From Hyaloraphidium curvatum SAG 235-1 (lineage: Eukaryota > Fungi > Monoblepharomycota): DNA of 64,000 nucleotides. This document shows, one piece after another, positions 43,907 through 56,100 of the stretch (position 1 is the first letter of the stretch; every line of letters starts with the position of its first letter). A program made the translations under genes and the position numbers. The notes beneath the pieces are model-generated. The model was given only the letters and a program-made list of their open reading frames with translations, had not been told where the DNA came from and searched no databases. Location: positions 434,001 through 498,000 of the forward strand of contig JAIVFI010000017.1 of the NCBI GenBank assembly GCA_025558095.1, in the 5' to 3' direction.

Positions 43907-46313
43907 TCAACCCCACACGTCGCGCCTGAACCCGCCGCGCTCCGCCCTCTTTTCCATCCAGAACTCGACGCCCTCGCCCTTGCCGGCCTCCCACCCCTCG
44001 CATTCCTCGAAGATCTCGCCCAGGGCGGCGAGCACGCCCTTGCCCATCGTCTTGGCGTCGCCGCACGTGTAGACGACCGAGCTTTCGTCCTTCAGGAAGG
44101 CGTGCACGTCCTTGCCGTGCGCACGCAGCGCGTGCTGCACGTAGCGCATCTCTGCGTCCGCCGGCGGCGCCGCAGAAAGCTCCGACCGCTCGGGCTCGCG
44201 CGAGTAGACCACGTCCAGGCGGTCGAGCACGCCCTGCTCGCGCATCGCCCGCAGCTCGTCCAGGTAGACGGCGTCGCCGTCGCCCCCGGGAAACCTGCAC
44301 CCGTAGACGAGCCACCACTTGCCGCGCTTCCCTCCGCGGACGCGCTGCTGCAGGAACCCGCGGAAGGGCGTGATGCCCGTGCCGGTCGCGACCAGCAGCA
44401 CGTTGTGCTCCTCCTCGTCCGCCGGGGGCTCGAAGTTGGTGTGCGCCACGCGGGGGAACACGGGGACCTTGCCGCCGCCGGCGACGGCCAGGGCTTCGAG
44501 GAAGCCGGATGCGATGCCGCGGCGCGGGGATCCCCAGGAGGTCGTCCACTCCTGCTCGTTGAATGCGATGCGGCAGCCCGATGCGCCCTCCAACGGAGAG
44601 CCGGCGAAGGAGTAGTTCCGGGGCTGCAGTCGAGCAGCGTGCTCGACGAGCGCGGCCAGGAGCTGTGCCGTCTTTTCCGCCGGCGGCACGCACGACGGGA
44701 AGCACGACAAAACGTCCAAAAGAGTCGCACCGCACGTCTTGAGCGCACGGTAGGCGTTGATCCCCTCCTTGCTGCACAGGAACAGAAGGCGCTTGCGGTC
44801 GTCCTTGACCGTGGCCATATCCGCGAGCAGGCGCAGCACCGACTTTGTCGGGAACTGCGGCAGGTCCACCAACCACGTCAGCAGAGACCGCACCGTGAGC
44901 ATCGGTTCCTTCTCGCCCGTGATCGGGAACGGGTGGTGCTCCGGCCCGAGCCCGGCGTGCTCCGATCCGCGGATCACGACCTCGACATCCGCATCCTCTA
45001 TGCACAAGATGCGGATGATGCCGGCGACGAGCTCGGGAGGGTTCGGTGCGAGCACCGCCAGCGCGTCGCCGGCCTGCCAGCTCCACGGGACCTGCTCCAG
45101 GCCGACCTCGTGCACGGGCTGCGGCGCCCGGTCGCCGGTAAGGATGCGGTGCGTGGTGATGCGGGCCAAAAAGGGGTTGCTGTGCGACGCGGCAGCCGAG
45201 GGGCTGCTGCGGAAGGGGTACGGGTGCGGCTCGTGCGTGCGGCCGGTGTGCTGCAGCGAGACGCCGGAAGCGGGGGATTTGGTGACGTTGGTGAGCTGCT
45301 TAAACTTGCTCAGCTGCGCGTCAAAGTTGACCAGGGCATCGAAGCTGGTCAGGGGCCGGAAGTAGTCCGCGGCCGCGGGAACGGTGAAGGCTGCGCGCTG
45401 CACGGCCTCGACCGAGGGCGTGCGGGAAGCGATGGGCGGCGTGGGCGCCCGGAACTCGGGTGCCAGCGGCGGGAAGGTGAGCGGAGGTGCGATGTCGACA
45501 ACGGGGCTGACGCGGCCGTTGGACACCACGCCGAGCGGGATCTCGGCGGGCGGCGCGGCGGCCTTTTCGCCCTCCTCCTTCTTCCTGGCGGCCGCAAACG
45601 ATGCGAATGCGCTCAGAGCGTCCCGTTTCGGGCTCGTGCCGATCGATTTGAGGGCGGCGACCTTGACCGGGTCCCTCCAAACAAGGTCGGGCAGGATGTG
45701 CCACAGGTTGGCGATCCACGGGTCAACGACGGCCTCGATGCTGGAATTGCGGGTGCAGAGCAATGAAAGGAAGGGCAAAGAATGCAGGAAAGTGGGCGGA
45801 GGCGGCCGGTCAGGGGTGTGCGCGGGGCGGCGAGCTTCCGATGGATTCTCACCCCGTGGCATCGTCTGCCCAGCCCCGCTCAGCGACGCACTTCATGCCG
45901 CACTTTTGCAGCTCCCTGTCGAGCCGCTTAGCGCCGCCGCAGAAGTTGTCGTAGTTTGTGTCGCCCAGGCCGAGCAGCACGTAGTCCCGGCCCTCGAGCG
46001 CGGCCCGCTTGGGGTCGCGCTTGAGGAAGCGATAGAACTTCGTGCCGTTGTCGGGCACATCGCCGTCGCCGGTCGTCGAGCACACCAGCACGAGCAGCGG
46101 CGGCGGGGCGTCGGCGGCGAACGCCGCGTCGAAGTTCGGCACGCCCTTCGGCGGCCGCGCGATGAAGTCGTCCGCCGACGCGCACGCGGCGTCGAAGCCG
46201 CGGCGCGCCGCCGCCTCCTCGCGGATGTGCCGCGCGATCCACTCGGCGTTGCCGGTCTGCGAGGCGTACAGCACGAGCAGCGCGCGGTTGCGCGGGGGCC
46301 CGGGGAGCGTCAT
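43907..46313 (-). CDS. MTRR: Methionine synthase reductase-like diflavin oxidoreductase
   Basis: YASQTGNAE, STTGDGDVPDN, GLGDTNYDNFC, ADDATG|IEAVVDPW, LLFLCSKEG, LQPRNYS, TGTGITPFRGF, YTCGDAKTM, DVW end. Confidence 0.82.
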
Positions 46314-46484
46314 GGCGGAGTTTGGTGGGAGAAGCGTTTCGGAAGCGTTCGGGTGCTGGTCTTTGCCACCAGCCCTGGGAGTCAAAATCCGCGCCACCGC
46401 TCGGTTCCGATCATTCAGGCGGCGTCCGCATCGCTCGATCGAGGGCAATCGGACCCTTGGGCGGCATCCAATGTGCCTCCCGCA

Positions 46485-47264
46485 ATGTCGGACGACGAGG
46501 ACAGCGACCTCTGGGTCCGCCGCGTCACCATCCCTGGCACCACCTGCTTCCTGACCATTAGGGAGGACTTTGCCGGGCCGTCGGGCCTCGGAGGAACAAT
46601 CTGGGACCCCTCATTTATCCTCCTCGATGTGCTCGCCGCGAATGCCGCGGCCTGGAAGCTCAATACGCTTCGGGTCGCCGAACTTGGTTCCGGCCTCGGA
46701 GCTCTGGGGCTCGGCGCGTCCGCCCTTGGAGCCCCGGAAGTCCTCCTGACCGAGCGAGGCGAGGACATGCTCGAAATGCTGCAGTACAACGTCTCGGAGA
46801 ACCAGCTTTCGGGGGTACCTGGCCCCGGAGGGCTTCCGAAGATCGACGTCGCCGAGTTGGACTGGCTCGAAGCGAGCTTGGAACCCGATACCCACCTCGC
46901 GCCGCTCGTCGAGCGCCCGTTCGACCTGGTGCTCGCTGCAGAGTGCCTTTACGACCCCTCCATCGTGCTGCCTTTCCTGCGGGTCGCCGAGGCGCTGGCC
47001 TACGGCATCCCTCCTGATCCCGATCGGGAACCCATCATCCTCGTCTGCGGGGTCATTTCCGACGCTGCCTGGGCGTCATTTTCGGCGGCAGTCCCGGAAA
47101 ACGCCGCCGAAGGAGCCGAATGGGTGCGCGTGGAGGTGCCCGTGCCGGAGCTCTCGGACGCCGGCGCCGTGGTGGGCACCAGGGAGATACAGAGGCCGGA
47201 TCGCAAGTGCTGGCGGCTATATCGGCTGTTTCCTTCTTCCTCCCATGGTTCTGCGATACCCTAG
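46485..47264 (+). CDS. METTL21/EFM-family (Methyltransf_16) protein lysine methyltransferase, intronless
   Basis: GGTIWD, VAELGSGLGALG, ELDW, FDLVLAAECLY. Confidence 0.88.
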   Translation: MSDDEDSDLWVRRVTIPGTTCFLTIREDFAGPSGLGGTIWDPSFILLDVLAANAAAWKLNTLRVAELGSGLGALGLGASALGAPEVLLTERGEDMLEMLQYNVSENQLSGVPGPGGLPKIDVAELDWLEASLEPDTHLAPLVERPFDLVLAAECLYDPSIVLPFLRVAEALAYGIPPDPDREPIILVCGVISDAAWASFSAAVPENAAEGAEWVRVEVPVPELSDAGAVVGTREIQRPDRKCWRLYRLFPSSSHGSAIP

Positions 47265-47321: not shown

Positions 47322-48305
47322 CTAGTTGGCCAGGAACGATCCGTCGCCAAAGTTCTCCGACAAGTCCCGCCGAGGCGCTTGCCCCTTTCTTTGCTTGACG
47401 TAGAGCGCCGTCGCCGCGTCCAGCCCGCCGTCCGCGATGATCACTTGGCCGCTGTCGCCAAATCAGCCTTTTCGGAAGGGTCCATCCTCCAAACACCCAC
47501 TTGACGTACGACGACTCGTCGCTCGCGAGGAATAGCGCCACGTCCGCCATCTCCTCCGGCCTCCCGACCCTCCCGACGCCCGGTGCGCGGCTAACGTACT
47601 CGTCCTCGGCCGCGGCCGGTCCCGTCATGTTGGTCGCGATGAAACCCGGTGCGAGCGTGTTGAAACGCACTCCCCTGTGGCGGGGACCTAGCTGATACGA
47701 CGCGCAGTTGACAAGCTGGTGCGCTGCGGCCTTGGAGGCCGAGTAATCCGCGCTGATCCGTTTGCCTTCGGAGGTACCAGCCACGGAGCCGCAGACGATC
47801 ACGGAACCCGACGGGGCGGGTTTCGAGGGGGACGTGACGCACATGGCCGGCGTCGCGTGCTTGATGGCAAGGAAAGGGTGGAGGATGTTGACCTGTCGCC
47901 AGTCTCTGCTGTCAATCGGCCCCGGAACCGCTGTTCGGCGCCACCCACGTTCAAGGTCTCCTGAAAATCGCTCAGATCCATGCCCGTCAAGGACACTTTG
48001 TCGAGATTCGTCCCCCCGTGGCCCGCATTGGCGAAGAACACGTCCAGGCGTCCCCATTTCTCCAAGCAGTGGGCCACGAGCCTCTCCGTGTCCGGCTCGC
48101 TCGCCGCATCCGCGATAAAGTGTTCGCAATCGACTCCGACACCGCGAATCTCCTCGGCTAGTTCTTTGATCCCCTCGGGCCGCCGGCCGACCACCACCAG
48201 CGCGCGCGGGTTCTCGTCCGCGAACCGGCGCGCGCTGGCCGCGCCGATGCCGCTAGGGTGTCCGCATCCCGTGATAACGGCGACCTTGCCGTCCAACCGG
48301 CCCAT
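47322..48305 (-). CDS. Short-chain dehydrogenase/reductase, 2 introns
   Basis: MGRLDGKVAVITG, FFANAG, YSASKAA, PGFIATNM, FLASDESSYV|NGQVIIADGG. Confidence 0.9.
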
Positions 48306-48427
48306 ACTGGCAGAGAAAGGGCTCGAGGAGGTGCTGCTGAGTGAGCAAGCGATGGAGATTGACGGCAGTGTTGATCGCGTCGATCGCGTGGCGATCGCGG
48401 AGGCGCTCTTCGTCCTCGATCGATCAT

Positions 48428-49866
48428 CTATTGCGGCGAAGCGACAAGATGGCTCCTCGCAAACTCCACCAGCCTCTCCCTGAGCAGGATGTCGGGTCTG
48501 TCCGCTCCCGCCCCCGGTTCGCCTTCCACAAGGCCAGCAACCCGCTCCCTTGCCTGCCTGCCGAGGGCGAGCGCGGCTTCCACCATGCCGGAAAGGTCCT
48601 CCCATGGCTCCTCTGCGGCGCGTTTGCGCTGGCCCTTGGGGTCGACCGGGAGGAGGAGGGGGGCGATCGGGGGCTTTTCGGGGGGCAGGACGAACTCCGT
48701 GCCGGCGATCATGACCGTCAGGGGGCGCGAGAGGTCGACGTCCTTGCTGGAAGTCGTAAGGTGCGTGAGATGCCTCATAATCCGCGTGAAACCCCTGTCG
48801 CAAAGGAATTGAGCCGGGGTAGCAGGGGCTCCGAAGGCGCCCCACCTCCGGAGGATGTCGGTGCAGTGCGCGCGCGAGTTCCTCGGATCCTTGCCCTTCT
48901 TGGTCCACTTCGGTTTCTGCGGGGTCGTTTTCCCGTCCGGCTCGCCGCCGCCCGGTGCGGTCGGTCCGAAGTGCACCTGCTTGCCCTGCTCCTTTGGTTT
49001 GGCGGGGGACGGCGCAGGTGCGTCCGCCTCCATCAGCAGCCTGGTACCACTAGCGAAAGCACATGCGACGTGCGGTGCAACAGGATCGGGTTTGGGATCG
49101 AGCGGAGGCAGCGAGATGAGGGAAATGGAGGTGTGGTCGACCAGGTAGGTTTTCTGCGCCAGCCACGGGGAGGTTGCCGCGGTCTGGTCGGCATCGGAAG
49201 GCGGGGGAGTGTTGAGGGTGAGGAACAGCAACGCGCGGTAAGGATGGACGTGAAGGGCGTAGCGGAACTGCGGAAGCAACCGTCAAGGTCCGAGCGCCGC
49301 CCTCGCGGCGTGGAACCCACTCTGGTTACGTCCTTGGCGGAGTTGTTAGCTTGCGGCTCCAAAGGTACGACCACCCGGCTATTCCGCTTGGTACTCGCGT
49401 ATTTTGGCGCCTTCCCGGGCTTTGCGGGCGGAGCGGGGGCAAGCTCCGCGGCAGGCTCGGACCGTGGAGCGAACCGCAGAATCAGGGGCACCGCCCTCGC
49501 CCCGTCCTGCTTCTTCGGCGTCCTTTGTTTCGCCGACACCTGCGACGGAGCGGCGCTCTGCCCGGTCGCGGGCCCCGAGAGCGACGACTGCGACGTGACG
49601 CCGGTCCCCTGTTTGGCGTTCCCCGGCCTCGGTCCATCGAGCGACGCGGCGAACCGGAGCGTGCCGCGCAGCATCGCCCTGCATGCGGGCGGCTTCCGTG
49701 CGGCCTGCGACGGCGCGGCCGGGGAGCTCCCGCGGCTCGTGCGCCGCTTCTTTGCAGGGCGGTCCCCGTCCGCGGCCCCGTCGCCCGGCGCGTCCGAGGA
49801 GCCCGCGCCGACCGGCACGAGCTCCCGCAGCCACGGTTGGCATTTGAGAAAGGTGTCCAGGTCCAT
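48428..49866 (-). CDS. Hypothetical protein, 1 intron
   Basis: ORFs 49033-50475 and 48428-49279 join via GTGGGT..CCGCAG (~49322-49269); probable start MDLDTFLKCQPW; no domain recognised. Confidence 0.5.
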
Positions 49867-50029
49867 CTCCGGCAAGAGAGGAGCCTCGTACCGCTCGGCT
49901 GTCTCCGGATAAGCGCGGGCCGATCGAAGCCGCCCTGGACTTTTTCCTGAACTTGCTGACGGTTGCGGACGGAGGTGCCCGCACTGCCCGGGACACGGTC
50001 GACGTGCGCGCCGCGGTCGGCTTGGGCAC

Positions 50030-52413
50030 GACCGAGCTCTCCAAGCTGACTCTGGTGGAGCAGCTGGTGTTGGTCCGCCGCGGTCGTGGCGGGCAAGCTG
50101 CGCCAAAACGTTGTGCAACGGCTCCACGCCGGGGACCGCTTCCAGCCCGTGGACAACTCGGCGTTTGGGCGTTGGATTTCGGCCTATATCGGTCATCTCC
50201 ATCGGCTGAAGGAGGGCGGCACCGGCAAGGACGGCAAGCCCGTTCCTTTTGCCCTTGCCGACGTCGTTCGGGGCTGGAATGTACCGCGCATCAAGGCCGT
50301 CCAGAATGCCTTGGACAAGCAGAACCAGCAAACATTGATCAACACCACCACGGCACCCGGCCTTCCCGCGCTCATGAACAGGATGATCCCCGGCCTGGCC
50401 CGCGTCGTACGCGGTCCGGCGATGGACCGGGGGGACGCCCACGTGGACAGGTTCCAGCCCTACAAGTCTAACCACTTCCAGTCAAACGGTACCGACACCC
50501 GGGTCCTGGTGACCAACCAGCGCCATCCGCACCGCTACAACCAACTCGGCGGCGTGCGGACCAAGACTGCGGTGGGCCACTTGGCGCAGCGGCAGCTGAC
50601 TGCGAGCAGATGCTGACCACCACTCGATCGCGGCAGGCGGGGGACCCGATCCTCGGCGACAGCCCACGGTGGCCCAGCGACTGCAGGGGCTGCAAGAAGG
50701 GCAAGTGCGATCGGCTGTACCCCGGCTGCTCGTAGGTGTCCCACACGATCACCGACGCCGATATGCCTAATCCCGAGTTGCCGACGCCCGCGATCAGCGA
50801 CTGTGCCGCGGCCAACCGCGCGTGCGTGTACGATCTGCCCACCTGCAAGCCGTGCGAGGATGCAGAGCGAGATTGCGACGGCTGCATGCCGACCTGCGGG
50901 TGCGTCTCCAGCTTTGACGCGCATGCCGGCGCCACAGTCTCAGACCATCCGGTGCCGCGCAGCCACTGCTCTGCCAGCTCGACGTCGTGCACGTGGTCCG
51001 TCTCGCAGCCAGAGCAATTCGCGCAGGTGACAAGCAACGCGTTCCGCCGAACGCTGCCCGAACTTGCCGGGCATCGGCACATCAAGGCCGCGACCGCGGC
51101 AGCGGCGCCGGCGGCGGACACCGAGGCCGCGAGCGCGACCGCCGGCATCTCCTGCTCCATCGCCGACACCTCCCCCTCCTCGCGCCCCTCCTCGCGCCCC
51201 GCCCGGGCCCCCGGCCTGCGGCTCCACCCCGATTTCCAGCCGCTGCTCCTTGTCGTGCTGCCACGTTCGCGCCGGCGCCGCCGACACGCATGACCACGCG
51301 CGAATCGTGGTCCTAGAAGGACAGCTGTGCTGTCGCCCTCCATCCGGCCCCGGCGGCCGACGATTCCAGAAGCTGCAGAACGACGGCAAGGACGTGCCGT
51401 ACTTCTTCACGCACGCGACGACCATCGAGGCTGCGGACAGCCTCGCCCTCGAGTCGATCCTGGTGGCGGTCGACCCCGGCACCGGCGGCCACACCACCAG
51501 CATCACCGTTCGCTTCCGCGGCGAGGGTGGCCAGCTGGAACAACTGACCGTGCACCGCAAGTTCGAGCCCCTCTCGTCGGCCGGGTACCGTGCGCGCGAC
51601 GAGGAGGCGAGGTCGGCGGCCTGGTGGGAGGCACACGGCGCGATGTCGCAGGGGTTGCGCGGGATCTCGAGGTCGCCGTACCCCATGGACGGCGTCATGG
51701 CCGGTGCGCGAGCTGTCGTCCGCGTTTCCGAGCGCCGCAGTGCTGACCTCTTTCCCGTGCCCAGGTACCGCCTTCCTCCGCAATGCCGGCCCCCTCCTCG
51801 ACCACGCGCAGAGCCGCGAAGCCCAGCTGGCCAAGGCTTACCGGTTCCGCGCCGTCCAGGCCCGCAGCAACGCCATCATCAACTGGGTCACGGAGGCCTG
51901 CGAGGACGTACGTCGAGACGTACAACGCCGCCGTCCGCCAGGCCAAGGTCGCGCACGGTGGCCGCAAGCCGACCGCCGAGGAGCTCAGGACCACGGAGCG
52001 CGCGGCGCACGAGGCTGCGGAGCGGGCCGTCGACGGCATCGACGCGGTGCCCAACCCCATCGTCCTCCGCGGGGCCGGCCAGGGCTCGGCGTCCAAGATG
52101 CCGTACCGCGGCGGCATCGCCGAGCTGCTCTCGCGCCACTACCTGGTGATGCTCGGGGAACACCTCGCAACGGTGCCCGACGTGCTTGTCAGAGTTGAAG
52201 CCGTACCCGCTGCGCAAGGGCGATGTAGAGCACAAGGTCTGCCCATCCTGTACCGGTTGCTCGGACAGGCACGGCTTCAAGGACAAGCTCGAGGTCAACA
52301 AGAATCGGTCGGCGACGCTGTGCCTCGTTCGAGTTTTCCTGCACATCATCGCCACCGGCCAGCGGCCCGCCGCCTTCACCCACCCCGCCGCTTTGCGCGG
52401 AACAGCCGGATAA
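50030..52413 (+). mobile_element. Decayed Fanzor1/TnpB-like RNA-guided endonuclease gene with spliceosomal introns
   Basis: RuvC-I ILVAVDPG (D 51472), PIVLRGAG..LLSRHYLVMLGEH (E 52158), CPTC..CPSC zinc ribbon, EVNKNRSA (RD to KN), C-terminal GQRPAAF; introns 50572-50636 and 51704-51764; TAG 50733-50735 and frameshifts; 5' end undefined. Confidence 0.75.
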
Positions 52414-52605
52414 ACCGACCCGGCGCGAACCTGAATGGGTGAGTGTGGATTGCTCTCGGGCAGGGCTTTCTCCGGTTCTGAGCATTGACGGAGGAGTTAA
52501 CCAACCATGCCCCCCCCCCCCCTTGGTTGCTCGAAGTCAATCAAGTTTCGTCCATCAACTTCACCGAAGTGGCCCGTGCCACACCGAGCTAGCTCAATCG
52601 CCCCA

Positions 52606-53112
52606 TCACGTCGCCGAAGAAGGGGCTTGTGGCATGACCACGATCCCGTCCTCATCGGCACACAACCACTCCCCCGGGCGGATCAGGACCCCTTGAATCG
52701 TGACGGGCACCTCGACCAGTCCCGGCGCCTTCCTGTCGGTCGGCATCGGCACGTTCGCGAGTGCAAACAGTCCGACGTCGCTCGCCGCAAGTTCCGCCAC
52801 GTCCCGAACGCAGCCGTCCACGACCGCGCCTGCCCAACCGTTCTTGGCCGCCGCCGCGGCGATGTTGCCGCCAATCAGAGCCCGGCGAAGCGAGCCGCCC
52901 CCATCGACGACCAAAACGCGTTCTTCTCCGGGAGATTCCAAAAGCTGCTTGACTGACGTATTGTCCTCGTAGCATTTCGCGGTCACGACCGTGCCGTGAA
53001 AGGCCTTTCGCCCGCCGTATGATCGGAATACAGGAGGAAGAACGCGAAAGGTCCAGTCAGACGACGCTTTGTACGCGTCGCAGAGGTCGCAGGTTGAGAC
53101 ATGGGTGGCCAT
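52606..53112 (-). CDS. rraA: RraA/MenG-family (HMG aldolase / RNase E regulator) protein, intronless, bacterial-like
   Basis: STCDLCD, KCYEDN, VLVVDGGGSLRRALIGGNI, GWAGAVVDGCVRD, ADEDGIVV. Confidence 0.92.
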   Translation of the reverse strand: MATHVSTCDLCDAYKASSDWTFRVLPPVFRSYGGRKAFHGTVVTAKCYEDNTSVKQLLESPGEERVLVVDGGGSLRRALIGGNIAAAAAKNGWAGAVVDGCVRDVAELAASDVGLFALANVPMPTDRKAPGLVEVPVTIQGVLIRPGEWLCADEDGIVVMPQAPSSAT

Positions 53113-53191
53113 CAGAGCGAGAAGTGGAGAGCTGGATGGACTGACGAGAGACTCCAGGCCCACGCTGCCACCGACGATACCCATTTCCGAC

Positions 53192-56100
53192 ATGCTCGGC
53201 GGCGCGCCGGCCGCAGGCATGGAGCTCTCGTGGCAAAAACTGGCTCCAGATGATCCAACGGGCCAGCGCGAGGCGCCTGCGTCCTCGCCGAACGCGACGG
53301 AGCCGGACAGCGAGCCGCCCGTCCCGCCGGCGCCCCCGCAACCCTCTGCGCGGCATTCGCACGTGCTGCTGCCGTACAAAATACCCGACAGGAATGAGGA
53401 CATGGTTTTGCTTTTGGGAGGCGGCTCTGCGGACGGTCTGAGGGAGGACGTGGCCTGGTGCTTTCACCTCCGTGGGTTCAAGTTGGAGCACTCGCTCGTT
53501 CCACTATTAGAGCCTTCCTTCAACGCATTTCCAATGTCGGGACACAACAATGGTTTCGTTATTCTCCAGAATCTCGCTCTTGGGCTCCTGTTCAGCTGGT
53601 GGGCGACCCGTTTCCGCCCATCGCCGGTTGCGCGGCGACCGTCGTTGGAGAGGACGCCTACATCTACGGCGGCATTGTCTCTAAAGAGCAATCTGACGGG
53701 CTTACGGTCGATGTCCTGCAGCGCAAAGTGGGTCGTTCTGAGGATTACGTCGAGGCGCGACGTTCACCTTGGTACAGCTCTACAGAGTGAACCTTCCGAC
53801 CCACACCGTCACACTTCTCTATCCTCGCCCGATTCCTGCTTCGTCTCCTTTCCCTCCGCCGACACCCAACCTCAATCTTCCCCCCGCTTTGATCCACGCG
53901 ACGCTGTGCTATCTTCCCCATCCCGACCAACCGGGTGACCTCGTTCTCTTTGGCGGCTTCAGCAGCTCGGCCGAATCTCAGGACAGCACCTGGTCGTTCG
54001 ACCTGTCCCAGCCGGCACGAGGCTGGCGCCGTGCGGAGCTTCCGCAAATGAAACCGCAGGCCCGGGACGGGCATGGCGCCGTAATCTGGAAGGTCGGAGA
54101 CAAGAGGAAGCTCATGGTCGTGGGAGGATCGTCGCGGGGGTTGGTCAAGGGTTTGCGGCTCGGCGACGTTTGGGAGCTGGAGTGGGGTGGGTCAATCTGC
54201 TCGGTCACATTCCTCGGAGCGCGTGGCTCATTAGGGAACCCGAGCAGACGAGCCGCGCCCTTCTTGGTCGCCCGTTTTCCCCGAAGCTGGCTCGCCTCTC
54301 CTCCCTCCGCGAGCGCAGCTCACGACCCACCTGGTCGGGCGCAAGCTCATATGCGTGTTTGGCAAGCTTGCTGCCGGCTCGCTGGAAGAGCGCAACAAAG
54401 TCTCGGACGAGATCTGGTGTTTTGATCTGTCGTCCCGGACGTGGGAAAAGCTCTGGTCGGGGGAGAGCGGGTCTGGTCCAAAGGCCCGAGGCGGGCATGC
54501 TTCTTGCTTGGTAAGTCGTGAAGTCTCGCAGCCATCGAGAGCGCTGAACATTTGTGGCCAAGCTCGGGACTGACCTCTTCATTCACGGCGGCGCGGGACA
54601 CGATACCAACGACGAGGCCGAAACCTCCCTTTCCGACACATGGCTCCTCCCTCTCGGACCTCCTGCTCCGATCGGTCCTCCCCGAATCGTCGACATCTCT
54701 GATACGGCTTTCACAATTCGATGGACCGATCCATACCCGTCCCAATCCGTCGCGTACAGGGTCGACTGCCGGCCGGAAGGCGGAGCAACCTGGACGGAGA
54801 CTTTGGTGCCTGCTGGATCATTGACGGAGCATCGCATGGAAGGACTGAACGTCAACAATGGGTACGAATGTCGTGTGGTGGCCATCGGAGCTTCTGGCGA
54901 CAGCACACGTTGGGGTGAGCCCGAATCCGTGGAGGCGTGGACCTACGGTGGGTTGGAAATCATGCAAGAGCACATGTCTCGATGTTGACGTAGCTGCGCA
55001 GGTCCGCCCGACCAACCGGCCATTTCCCATGTTGTGCCCGTGCGGGATTTCGTGAGCGTCCACGTGGTTCGACCCCGTCAACATGCATGGGACCCGCCAT
55101 CTGGTCGTACGGACGTCCAGATCCGTATCAAATCCGTGGACATCGACGACGGTGGACCGCCGATTTCCGAGGCTCCAGAGGGTGACAGACCGGCCGCGAA
55201 GCCGAGGGCGACAAAGATCCACTACAAGGGAATCTCGACGTTCGTGCCAGCGGCCGCGCGCGCTTCTCCCGCTCCGGATGTGCCACAGGATTTCGAAGCT
55301 ACTCTTTCGATCGGACCCGGGGAATCAGTCGCGGAGGTCTCCATTTCCTTGTTGGCCTCACATGTACACGCGCGGTCCTCCTCTTTCCGGGAAGCAGAGC
55401 AGCGGGTGGCCGCGGCCGCTGAAGAATACGCTCTGCGGATCCACGAGCTTCGGAAGCTTGCTTTGCCAGGTGCCGAGCCCGGGCCGGACGCGGATGAAGC
55501 GGACCAACCGAGAAGGAGGGGCCGCCGTGAGCTCTTCGAGAACTCGGATGACTTCCCGCTCGACCTCGAGAAGGTGGAGGCCGAGCCGCCTAGCGACTAC
55601 AAGCACAAGGTCTACGTCATCTATGAAGCCCGCGCTCTGGTGGAAAACGCTTACGGGCGGAGTCCCCTGAGCAAAGCCGTGACTTTCCAGAGAGCCGAGT
55701 ACATCAGCGCGCCCATACCATGGCGAGCTAGGCCGGAGCCGACGGAAGAGATGCTTCGCCGGGCGGAGCAGCTCGAACAGGCACGGAGAGAGCGCGAGGA
55801 GGAGGAACGGCGGCAGGAGGCCGAGTTCGAAGCCGAAATGCGCCTCCTGGGAATCGAAACTGGGGCGGACGGAGCCGAAGACGAAACCGACGGACGGAGG
55901 GTCAAGAAACCCCGGAAGGACAAGTCTGCTGACGCGGTCAACGCTGCCGGAGTGGAGCCGCCGCCAAGGAAGCCTCGACCGCCGAAGGAACCCGTTCAGC
56001 TCGTGCCACCGGAGCCGGAAGCGGATTGGATCTCGCCGCCTCCGCTACAAGGCGACGAGTATCCGAACGGGCTGCCCAATCGGTGGCCGTACAACATCGA

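Follow-up and report, generated by a model that had tools for sequence, protein, structure and literature searches.

The 64,000-nucleotide stretch of contig JAIVFI010000017.1 analysed here (hereafter, the window), from the fungus Hyaloraphidium curvatum SAG 235-1, carries on its forward strand, at positions 49889–52506, a 5′-truncated copy of a 13.4-kb repeat, reduced to its final 2.6 kb. Full-length copies of this repeat encode a giant protein with a predicted Fanzor1-type module, that is, a eukaryotic relative of the TnpB RNA-guided nucleases. We consider it very likely that this window copy is a non-functional relic, namely an incomplete 3′ copy of the unit that decayed afterwards. A preliminary description of the window had already seen here a decayed copy of a Fanzor-related family, which is borne out by the lesions, the Fanzor1 profile matches, and the structural match presented below, although its limits (50030–52413) had been drawn too narrowly, as shown by blastn and tblastx. 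It had also anticipated better-preserved copies elsewhere in the 32-Mb, GC-rich genome, and these were found at C8:319067–332501 and C31:147040–133551 (C8, C31, C15, and similar labels designate other contigs of the assembly, the window lying on C17), together with an annotated paralog, P0001 (KAI9027716.1), a 2,449-residue hypothetical protein with a Joint Genome Institute (JGI) gene model, encoded by the copy that we call C8b (C8, 82–90 kb).

The homology of the window to the repeat begins at 49889 when assessed with tblastx, and nucleotide identity in a blastn of the genome runs from 49899 to 52506, at 90.6% to C8:329868–332493 and 90.3% to C31:136180–133559. Upstream of 49889, the window contains no homologous sequence and hence no upstream exons of the parent gene, which makes the window copy a 5′-truncated one: it retains the ~750 last codons of the parent, four introns, and a 3′ tail of 93 nt, and is devoid of ~1,700 upstream codons. 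The two full-length copies are 95% identical to each other across 13.5 kb, and a 450-bp fragment on C15 corresponds to the 3′-terminal part of the repeat (89% identity to the window copy). The 3′ end, ...GGAGTTRACCAACC, is identical in all four loci and is followed by unrelated flanks, and the two full copies, whose flanks are unrelated at either end, share their 5′ end as well. The recurrence of 2.6 kb on two contigs at 90–91% identity, along with a protein identity of 53–63% between the last exon and its counterparts in three older paralogs (C8b, C14, and C5), is beyond chance. Just outside the relic, a run of 13 C occupies window positions 52510–52522, four bases past the 3′ end and behind a 3-nt ATG, where the other copies read TCTCTCCC.

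Exons, introns, and lesions of the window copy

All the features of the relic lie on the forward strand. The first exon piece (49899–50571), delimited by a three-copy alignment and by tblastn to P0001, is homologous to residues ~1700–1965 of this protein and precedes the zinc clusters; it contains FQSNGTDT (50476–50499; FLSNGHAT in P0001), which occupies the column of the family's F..f..T(D/N)G-type motif in the alignment underlying profile A4 (see below). Exon B (50637–50731, with limits taken from spliced contigs) encodes the first half of a first Zn2Cys6-type cluster (CRGCKKGKCDRLYPGC), and exon C (50798–50899, from spliced contigs and homology to P0001 1997–2030) encodes the end of this first cluster and the start of a second one. 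Exon D (50963–51703, 50.7% identity to P0001 2080–2227) then comprises the end of the second cluster, an Ala/Pro insert, the last WED strands, and the RuvC-I motif ILVAVDPG (Asp codon at 51472–51474), which aligns with CDPGK of GtFz1 and whose strand ends in Asp in the structural model. Finally, the last exon (51765–52413), which bears the profile match to Fanzor1 structures, encodes a helical region, the G-rich strand NPIVLRGAGQG (52053–52085, of which PIVLRGAGQG spans 52056–52085), the alternative Glu (GAA, 52158–52160) followed by the TSQ-CxxC...CxxC zinc ribbon, the RuvC-III motif NKNRSATLCL (Asn codon at 52303–52305), and GQRPAAF ahead of the stop codon TAA (52411–52413). The fragments that had been read by eye (ILVAVDPG, AYRFRAVQARSNAI, PIVLRGAGQG, LGEH/SQRCPTC, CPSC, NKNRSATLCL, GQRPAAF, and the stop) thus all lie where they had been placed. 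Two of the motif assignments had to be revised, however: RuvC-III, expected as NRD, is actually NKN, and TAGISCSI, proposed as the WED motif in place of FQSNGTDT, falls in the low-complexity Ala/Pro insert, which is absent from the diverged paralogs C14 and C8b and is broken in the window copy by a 10-bp insertion.

The splicing of the family could be followed in cDNA-like contigs from X1, a public H. curvatum run, aligned to the region; these contigs skip parts of it, which implies that X1 contains cDNA. In the stretch equivalent to the window copy, contigs of paralogs reveal four spliced introns, with exon junctions that agree with the JGI spliced model of P0001. Intron A (50572–50636, GT-AG, 65 nt, with two CTGAC) sits at the exon junction HAK|ETPK of this model, and its donor is used in contig record 4; intron D (51704–51764, GT-AG, 61 nt, with one CTGAC) is skipped in contig record 5, its joint being ambiguous by ~3 nt owing to letters common to both sides of the intron. 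Both had been correctly recognized beforehand as real introns, as had the acquisition of host (spliceosomal) introns by the family. By contrast, intron B (50732–50797, GT..AG, 66 nt) and intron C (50900–50962, GTGCGT..CAG, 63 nt), each skipped in an X1 contig, had been overlooked, and the TAG at 50733 that had passed for a nonsense mutation is part of the intron B donor, GTAGGT, and is common to all three copies. Contig record 4 displays a 61-nt skip from the 50572 donor and carries C31-specific letters, which trace it to the C31 copy; it uses a C31-specific AG acceptor that precedes the canonical AG at 50636 by 4 nt, so that this C31 transcript is out of frame. The new AG arises in C31 from a 3-bp deletion and a C>A change at the equivalent of window positions 50626–50632.

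Lesions were called by aligning the window copy with C8 and C31. Four frameshifting indels are specific to the window copy, namely −2 bp after 50081, +10 bp at 51153–51162, −17 bp after 51904 (inside a helix), and −5 bp after 52158 (at the passage from the catalytic Glu to the TSQ-CxxC strand), to which an in-frame deletion of 3 bp after 52143 must be added; no in-frame nonsense substitution was found in this alignment. The three frameshift zones first suspected (~51170–51300, ~51905, and ~52165) therefore all correspond to real window-specific indels, when the −2 bp and the in-frame −3 bp had gone unnoticed. With four frameshifts and ~1,700 upstream codons lost, the window copy does not hold an intact open reading frame (ORF), whereas the last exon of C8 and C31 forms a single open frame of 224 codons. 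An X1 contig matches the window copy exactly over 51827–52099, a segment that spans the window-specific 17-bp deletion, and the window copy itself is probably transcribed, DNA carry-over being the alternative source of this contig. This presence of window DNA or RNA in a cDNA-like library, together with the lack of in-frame nonsense substitutions, might be taken to indicate a working gene in which extra introns, alternative splicing, or programmed frameshifting get around the apparent frameshifts. We hold this to be highly improbable, because every frame break is an indel that two paralogs, open in one frame, do not have, because two of these indels strike a helix and the junction between the catalytic Glu and the zinc-ribbon strand, and because the lost parent codons are not compensated by any homologous upstream exons. 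We infer that the window copy is unable to make a Fanzor-type protein, though it may still be transcribed. It would have originated from an incomplete copying of the unit, with decay afterwards. The relic itself is as such an ordinary pseudogene fragment, and it is the parent family that is the object of interest.

A giant parent protein with a Fanzor1-type module

The parent is a multi-exon, intron-rich protein of ~2,450 residues with a C-terminal Fanzor1-type module of ~400 residues or more, and not the ordinary stand-alone Fanzor initially supposed, since this module is the C-terminal part of a giant protein that carries inserted Zn2Cys6 clusters. The C8 unit displays collinear protein similarity to the older paralogs C8b, C14, and C5 across ~8.3 kb (tblastx and tblastn), and the homologous exons of the window copy are 50–72% identical to P0001. 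The two Zn2Cys6 clusters are inserted between the F..f..T(D/N)G motif and RuvC-I: Pfam detects Zn_clus (PF00172) in P0001:1960–2075 in two stretches (E = 6e-6, 26.7 bits vs a cut-off of 21), with two CX2CX6CX6CX2CX6C units in 1975–2043. Exons B–D of the window copy carry the same Cys pattern, split over the three exons and read there by eye only; in the subfamily formed by the window copy and C8, the second spacer of the zinc cluster has 4 residues, not 6. As for the N-terminal region of the giant protein, its conserved motifs YYVDG, GEADGH, and SSDRDLLY recall PIN nucleases of the FEN/XPG type. The AlphaFold2 (AF2) model of this region is poor, with a predicted local distance difference test (pLDDT) score of 47 and only weak matches to XRN2, T5-FEN, and FEN-1, and the N-terminal half gave no match in Pfam, in a profile search of the PDB, or in Atlas, so we regard the putative PIN/FEN-like region as a lead and not as a finding. 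A homologous-protein search for other giant relatives returned P0001 itself and nothing else. At the start of the giant gene, C8:323356–324909 encodes a candidate ubiquitin-like domain that ends in ...VRLPGG, with Gly/Arg-rich and acidic stretches of low complexity after it. In the C5 paralog (C5:742605–743517), the last exon is matched twice (query 2–131 and 24–221) in different frames, which suggests an internal duplication or rearrangement and thus possibly another damaged copy.

The relationship of the module to Fanzor1 was assessed with profiles and with structure. When 1.84 billion representatives were searched with a profile of five last exons, 132 proteins matched, mostly metagenomic and mostly across the last ~110 residues only; contrary to what had been proposed, the family is consequently not strictly lineage-specific. 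Matches to PF07282 (Cas12f1-like TNB) were sub-threshold but consistent, in 6 of the 10 homologues tested. A tail profile built from 97 sequences (A3, 116 positions) matched, among PDB entries, PpFz1, the Fanzor1 of Parasitella (E = 4.3e-14), SpuFz1 (3.4e-8), GtFz1 (4.9e-6), and the TnpB of ISDra2 (1.2e-4), as well as LaTranC, with matches covering the full tail; a longer profile reaching RuvC-I (A4) matched PpFz1 (1.2e-11), GtFz1 (1.6e-10, RuvC-I included), and SpuFz1 (6e-7). On the structural side, P0001:1690–2449 was modelled with AF2, the homologous exons of the window copy being searched separately. The pLDDT of residues 2059–2449 is mostly 75–95, with two short dips, Foldseek, at E ≤ 0.001, matched the P0001 model to members of the Cas12/Fanzor superfamily and to nothing else, and VIA-align ranks SpuFz first (Z 12.8, root mean square deviation 4.1, 240 residues), with PpFz at Z 11.8 and TnpB at Z 8.7. 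Both of the checks proposed at the outset, profile comparison with Fanzor/TnpB and structural comparison with SpuFz1, were hence positive.

One could still argue that the motifs come from an unrelated RNase-H-like or zinc-ribbon family, for instance another transposase class, and that the likeness to Fanzor is superficial. As a matter of fact, Pfam returned nothing above threshold and nothing relevant for the raw ORF pieces of the window copy, phmmer with a single exon against the PDB gave no Fanzor match, only the profiles built from homologues being successful, and the Cys-rich exons had at first pointed to other transposase-type zinc modules. We nonetheless give this idea almost no credence: the profile searches matched only proteins of the Fanzor1, TnpB, and Cas12 groups, along all 116 positions of the tail and also at RuvC-I, the top structural matches are Fanzor1 and Cas12 only, and the Cys-rich part proved to be PF00172 above its cut-off.

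The catalytic site can be read in the same alignments. DPG supplies the Asp aligned with D383 of SpuFz1, LGE(H/Y)xTSQ the Glu aligned with E541, and NKN, through its middle Asn, the residue aligned with D606; D383, E541, and D606 are the catalytic residues of SpuFz1 (PMC10432273), and the triad is complete in the parent copies. In Fanzors, RuvC-II is rearranged: the canonical Glu site is occupied by an inert Gly/Pro, and an alternative Glu lies ~30–45 residues downstream (PMC10530073). This rearrangement is present here, with NPIVL(C/R)GAGQG providing a Gly at the canonical position and LGE(H/Y)xTSQxCPxC following it, and the alternative Glu, aligned with E541 of SpuFz1, is invariant in 97/97 aligned tails. 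The third catalytic residue is an Asp in 93 of these tails and an Asn in the other 4, which are P0081 and three giant copies from H. curvatum. Beyond these aligned tails, the window copy and P0002 likewise have Asn, as does a second local family with copies on C2, C11, and C13. With regard to this residue, N658 of GtFz1 was shown to be catalytic, and the D606N mutant of SpuFz1 to be more active than the wild type (Xu et al. 2024; PMC11423790). GtFz1 has NRN at RuvC-III in the A4 profile alignment, and the giant family, judging from its aligned sequences, carries the known D-E-N variant as in the active GtFz1, NKN being no sign of inactivation. A nuclease-dead reading, in which NKN would represent a dead RuvC-III like that of bacterial TldR, was considered and dropped on account of the NRN of GtFz1, of the activity of Asn there, and of the hyperactivity of SpuFz1 D606N. 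As modelled, the family is of the Fanzor1 type, with a RuvC domain with rearranged Glu, a TNB zinc ribbon, WED strands, and a terminal G.RP..F.

Copying, selection, and the 3′ tail

Residence of a Fanzor in a transposon would show as inverted repeats and target-site duplications (TSDs), and as an associated transposase such as a Mariner, Helitron, Sola, MuDR, or IS4-like enzyme. In H. curvatum, no terminal inverted repeats (TIRs) were detected when one end of the C8 unit was compared with the other, no TSD is obvious by eye at the copy flanks, no Pfam transposase was identified in the seven long ORFs of the unit, and no DDE_3 (IS630/Tc1) match falls inside it, the many DDE_3 loci of the genome lying elsewhere; neither unit end has extra or "ghost" copies in the genome, with the exception of an isolated 45-nt scrap on C1 (C1:1157782–1157826). 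The absence of a visible transposase had been noted from the start, and the inspection of copy flanks that had been advised yielded sharp ends shared at unrelated sites and no obvious TSD.

These observations leave room for another view, according to which the 13.4-kb units are duplicated host genes, constituting a domesticated family of giant Fanzor-derived proteins, and the copies in the window and on C15 are leftovers of segmental duplications or deletions. Besides the missing transposase, TIRs, and TSD, this view can draw on the small copy number (two full copies and two fragments only, without "ghost" 3′ ends), on the existence of a JGI gene model, on purifying selection, on a C8 transcript spliced into unique flanking DNA, like a host gene with a downstream exon, and on the position of the window copy between ordinary genes, a short-chain dehydrogenase (47799–48908, reverse strand) and an RraA-like gene (52606–53403, reverse strand). 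Conversely, an exact 3′ end common to four loci on four contigs and a 5′ end common to two, amidst unrelated flanks, is the signature of a discrete element, and the older subfamilies (C14/C5 and C8b) have the same unit-like organization, upstream similarity included. We therefore deem the host-gene view unlikely, albeit worth keeping in mind, and infer present or past mobility of the 13.4-kb unit or, at the very least, its repeated copying. Farther upstream in the window, the neighbors are likewise ordinary, with a FAD/NAD-binding reductase (43907–45862, reverse strand) and a lysine methyltransferase (Methyltransf_16; 45384–47264, forward strand).

The ratio of nonsynonymous to synonymous divergence (dN/dS) amounts to 0.09–0.29 between C8 and C31 and to 0.21–0.30 between the window copy and C8. 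At the level of the aligned codons, this shows purifying selection on the parent lineage, so that most of the divergence accumulated under constraint and the inactivation of the window copy is comparatively recent.

The 3′ tail (52414–52506, forward strand, 93 nt) is conserved in an alignment of seven copies. In these seven copies, a GCCGG/CCGGC hairpin around the stop (52405–52424) is invariant and a GTRMGT-type donor lies ~26 nt downstream of the stop (GTGAGT at 52439 in the window); a TTRAC branch-like motif precedes the end of the repeat by a few bases in all copies but C8b (TTAAC at 52497–52501 in the window). An X1 contig joins the equivalent of 52438 to the unique C8 flank, directly after ...CAAAAG, and the C8 transcript therefore has an 88-nt intron in its 3′ untranslated region (UTR) that crosses the repeat boundary. 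This 3′UTR intron (81–88 nt) starts 26 nt after the stop and consists of the last ~68–70 nt of the unit and 11–19 nt of flank. The scrap on C1 is 93% identical to a portion of it that includes a small hairpin, with no further element nearby. In SpuFz1, the omegaRNA is made of a 75-nt scaffold after the stop and a 14–15-nt guide (PMC10432273). The 93-nt tail would thus be a candidate omegaRNA location, matching the place expected in Fanzor1, and the 3′UTR intron could be envisaged as a guide source because its size and position match those of a Fanzor1 omegaRNA scaffold with its guide. Such a guide RNA derived from a spliced 3′UTR intron is speculative, and the fact that the first 8 flank bases are common to three copies weighs against a flank-derived guide. 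It is doubtful, though conceivable, that the family represents a new architectural class of Fanzor1, defined by ~2,450 residues, a D-E-N RuvC, twin Zn2Cys6 DNA-binding clusters, a PIN/FEN-like nuclease region at the N-terminus, and a guide RNA made by splicing.

Several points weigh against our interpretation of the window copy as a decayed fragment of a mobile, Fanzor1-encoding unit. First, the predicted structure and several of the tests rest on the paralog P0001, which is 50–72% identical to the exons of the window copy. Second, no omegaRNA can be demonstrated from the folding and covariation of the tails: the folding energies of the window, C8, and C14 tails are no better than those of shuffled sequences (z from 0.7 to −0.01), and covariation is weak, with 3 compensatory pairs only. 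Third, with one C31 transcript spliced 4 nt out of frame, intact-looking copies need not be functional. Fourth, the search of the 13.4-kb unit and its surroundings for a transposase, TIRs, or a TSD yielded none, so that mobility is deduced solely from the sharp ends that the copies share and from the scattering of fragments. Fifth, the introns and tail of the window copy are less diverged from C8 (11 differences in 255 nt and 6 in 93, i.e., ~4–6%) than the synonymous sites of the flanking exons (dS of 0.21–0.25), which a simple history of copying followed by neutral decay fails to explain. This low divergence of introns and tail relative to synonymous sites might be due to constraint acting on short introns, to gene conversion, or to third positions being hypermutable.

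Other Fanzor-like families and comparison with known systems

The genome contains further Fanzor-like loci. A second multi-copy family was found at C2:951814–955023, C30:188895–192290, C11:495878–499093, and C13:279501–282707, with an ORF of 489–559 residues featuring LDVG (RuvC-I-like), IIGDGG, and EWG(T/S)SQ, and then an apparent intron, a zinc ribbon, and VEKNVSATLCF; its RuvC-III is of the Asn type, like that of the giant family, the C30 copy matching the query with an unreadable motif. At about ten loci, a DDE_3 (IS630/Tc1) transposase domain and a weak Cas12f1-like TNB match are ~7.4 kb apart, without overlap with the 13.4-kb units (C7:376497/383875, C6:418739/426117, C3:625520/632898, C11:285476/292854, C28:412683/420061, and C35:360604/367982, besides others), and these loci look like a third, transposase-linked giant Fanzor family. 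In addition, PF07282 (TNB) exceeds the Pfam cut-off at C2:397554–397694, C5:336026–336172, and C2:426655–426792, one of these matches being in a 691-residue open frame; from their domain match, the three loci appear to be conventional Fanzor/TnpB-like genes of H. curvatum.

The relic itself adds little, since Fanzors with introns and partial Fanzor copies have been described before. It points, however, to a transcribed and selectively maintained giant Fanzor1-type family in an early-diverging fungus, the architecture of which is unusual in that zinc-cluster DNA-binding domains of fungal type are built into an RNA-guided module that also has an Asn-type catalytic site, reported to raise Fanzor activity. 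If active, this family would illustrate a eukaryotic elaboration of TnpB-type nucleases by protein-based DNA recognition, and its 3′UTR intron across the unit end would offer a testable route to guide-RNA production in a spliceosomal host.

Compared with known systems, the family is related to the TnpB of IS200/IS605 (ISDra2; PDB 8h1j/8exa) by a homologous RuvC–TNB core. It differs from these prokaryotic, intron-less proteins of ~400 residues, which have the canonical RuvC-II Glu and a TnpA partner, by its fungal genome, its spliced introns, its Gly at the canonical site, and scores that are lower for TnpB than for Fanzor1. Its zinc clusters share the six-Cys pattern of the fungal Zn(2)-Cys(6) cluster PF00172, above the Pfam gathering cut-off, but this domain usually stands at the N-terminus of transcription factors, when in P0001 it is an insertion inside a Fanzor-type protein. 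In the chytrid-grade genome of Spizellomyces punctatus, 42 loci carry Fz genes, which are full-length at 19 loci and partial at the others (PMC10432273), and decayed or partial copies thus occur beside intact ones as in H. curvatum; Spu-1 of S. punctatus is nonetheless ~2.1 kb long, with 30-nt inverted repeats and many ghost copies, in contrast to a 13.4-kb unit that has neither. With respect to Fanzor1 as a whole (SpuFz1, PpFz1, and GtFz1; PDB 8gkh, 9cf0, and 9cer), the giant parent departs by its size (~2,450 vs ~640–870 residues untagged, as estimated from PDB chain lengths minus the maltose-binding protein tag), by its two Zn2Cys6 clusters before RuvC-I, by an extended N-terminal region in which PIN/FEN-like signals are weak, by the lack of inverted repeats, and by a spliceosomal 3′UTR intron that crosses the unit end, its omegaRNA and its activity being putative. 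Yet the two have in common the RuvC fold and the TNB zinc ribbon, the Gly-rich strand at the canonical RuvC-II site with the alternative Glu before TSQ-CxxC, the N(R/K)(D/N) helix start and the terminal G.RP..F, as well as a fungal host, introns, and several full and partial copies per genome.

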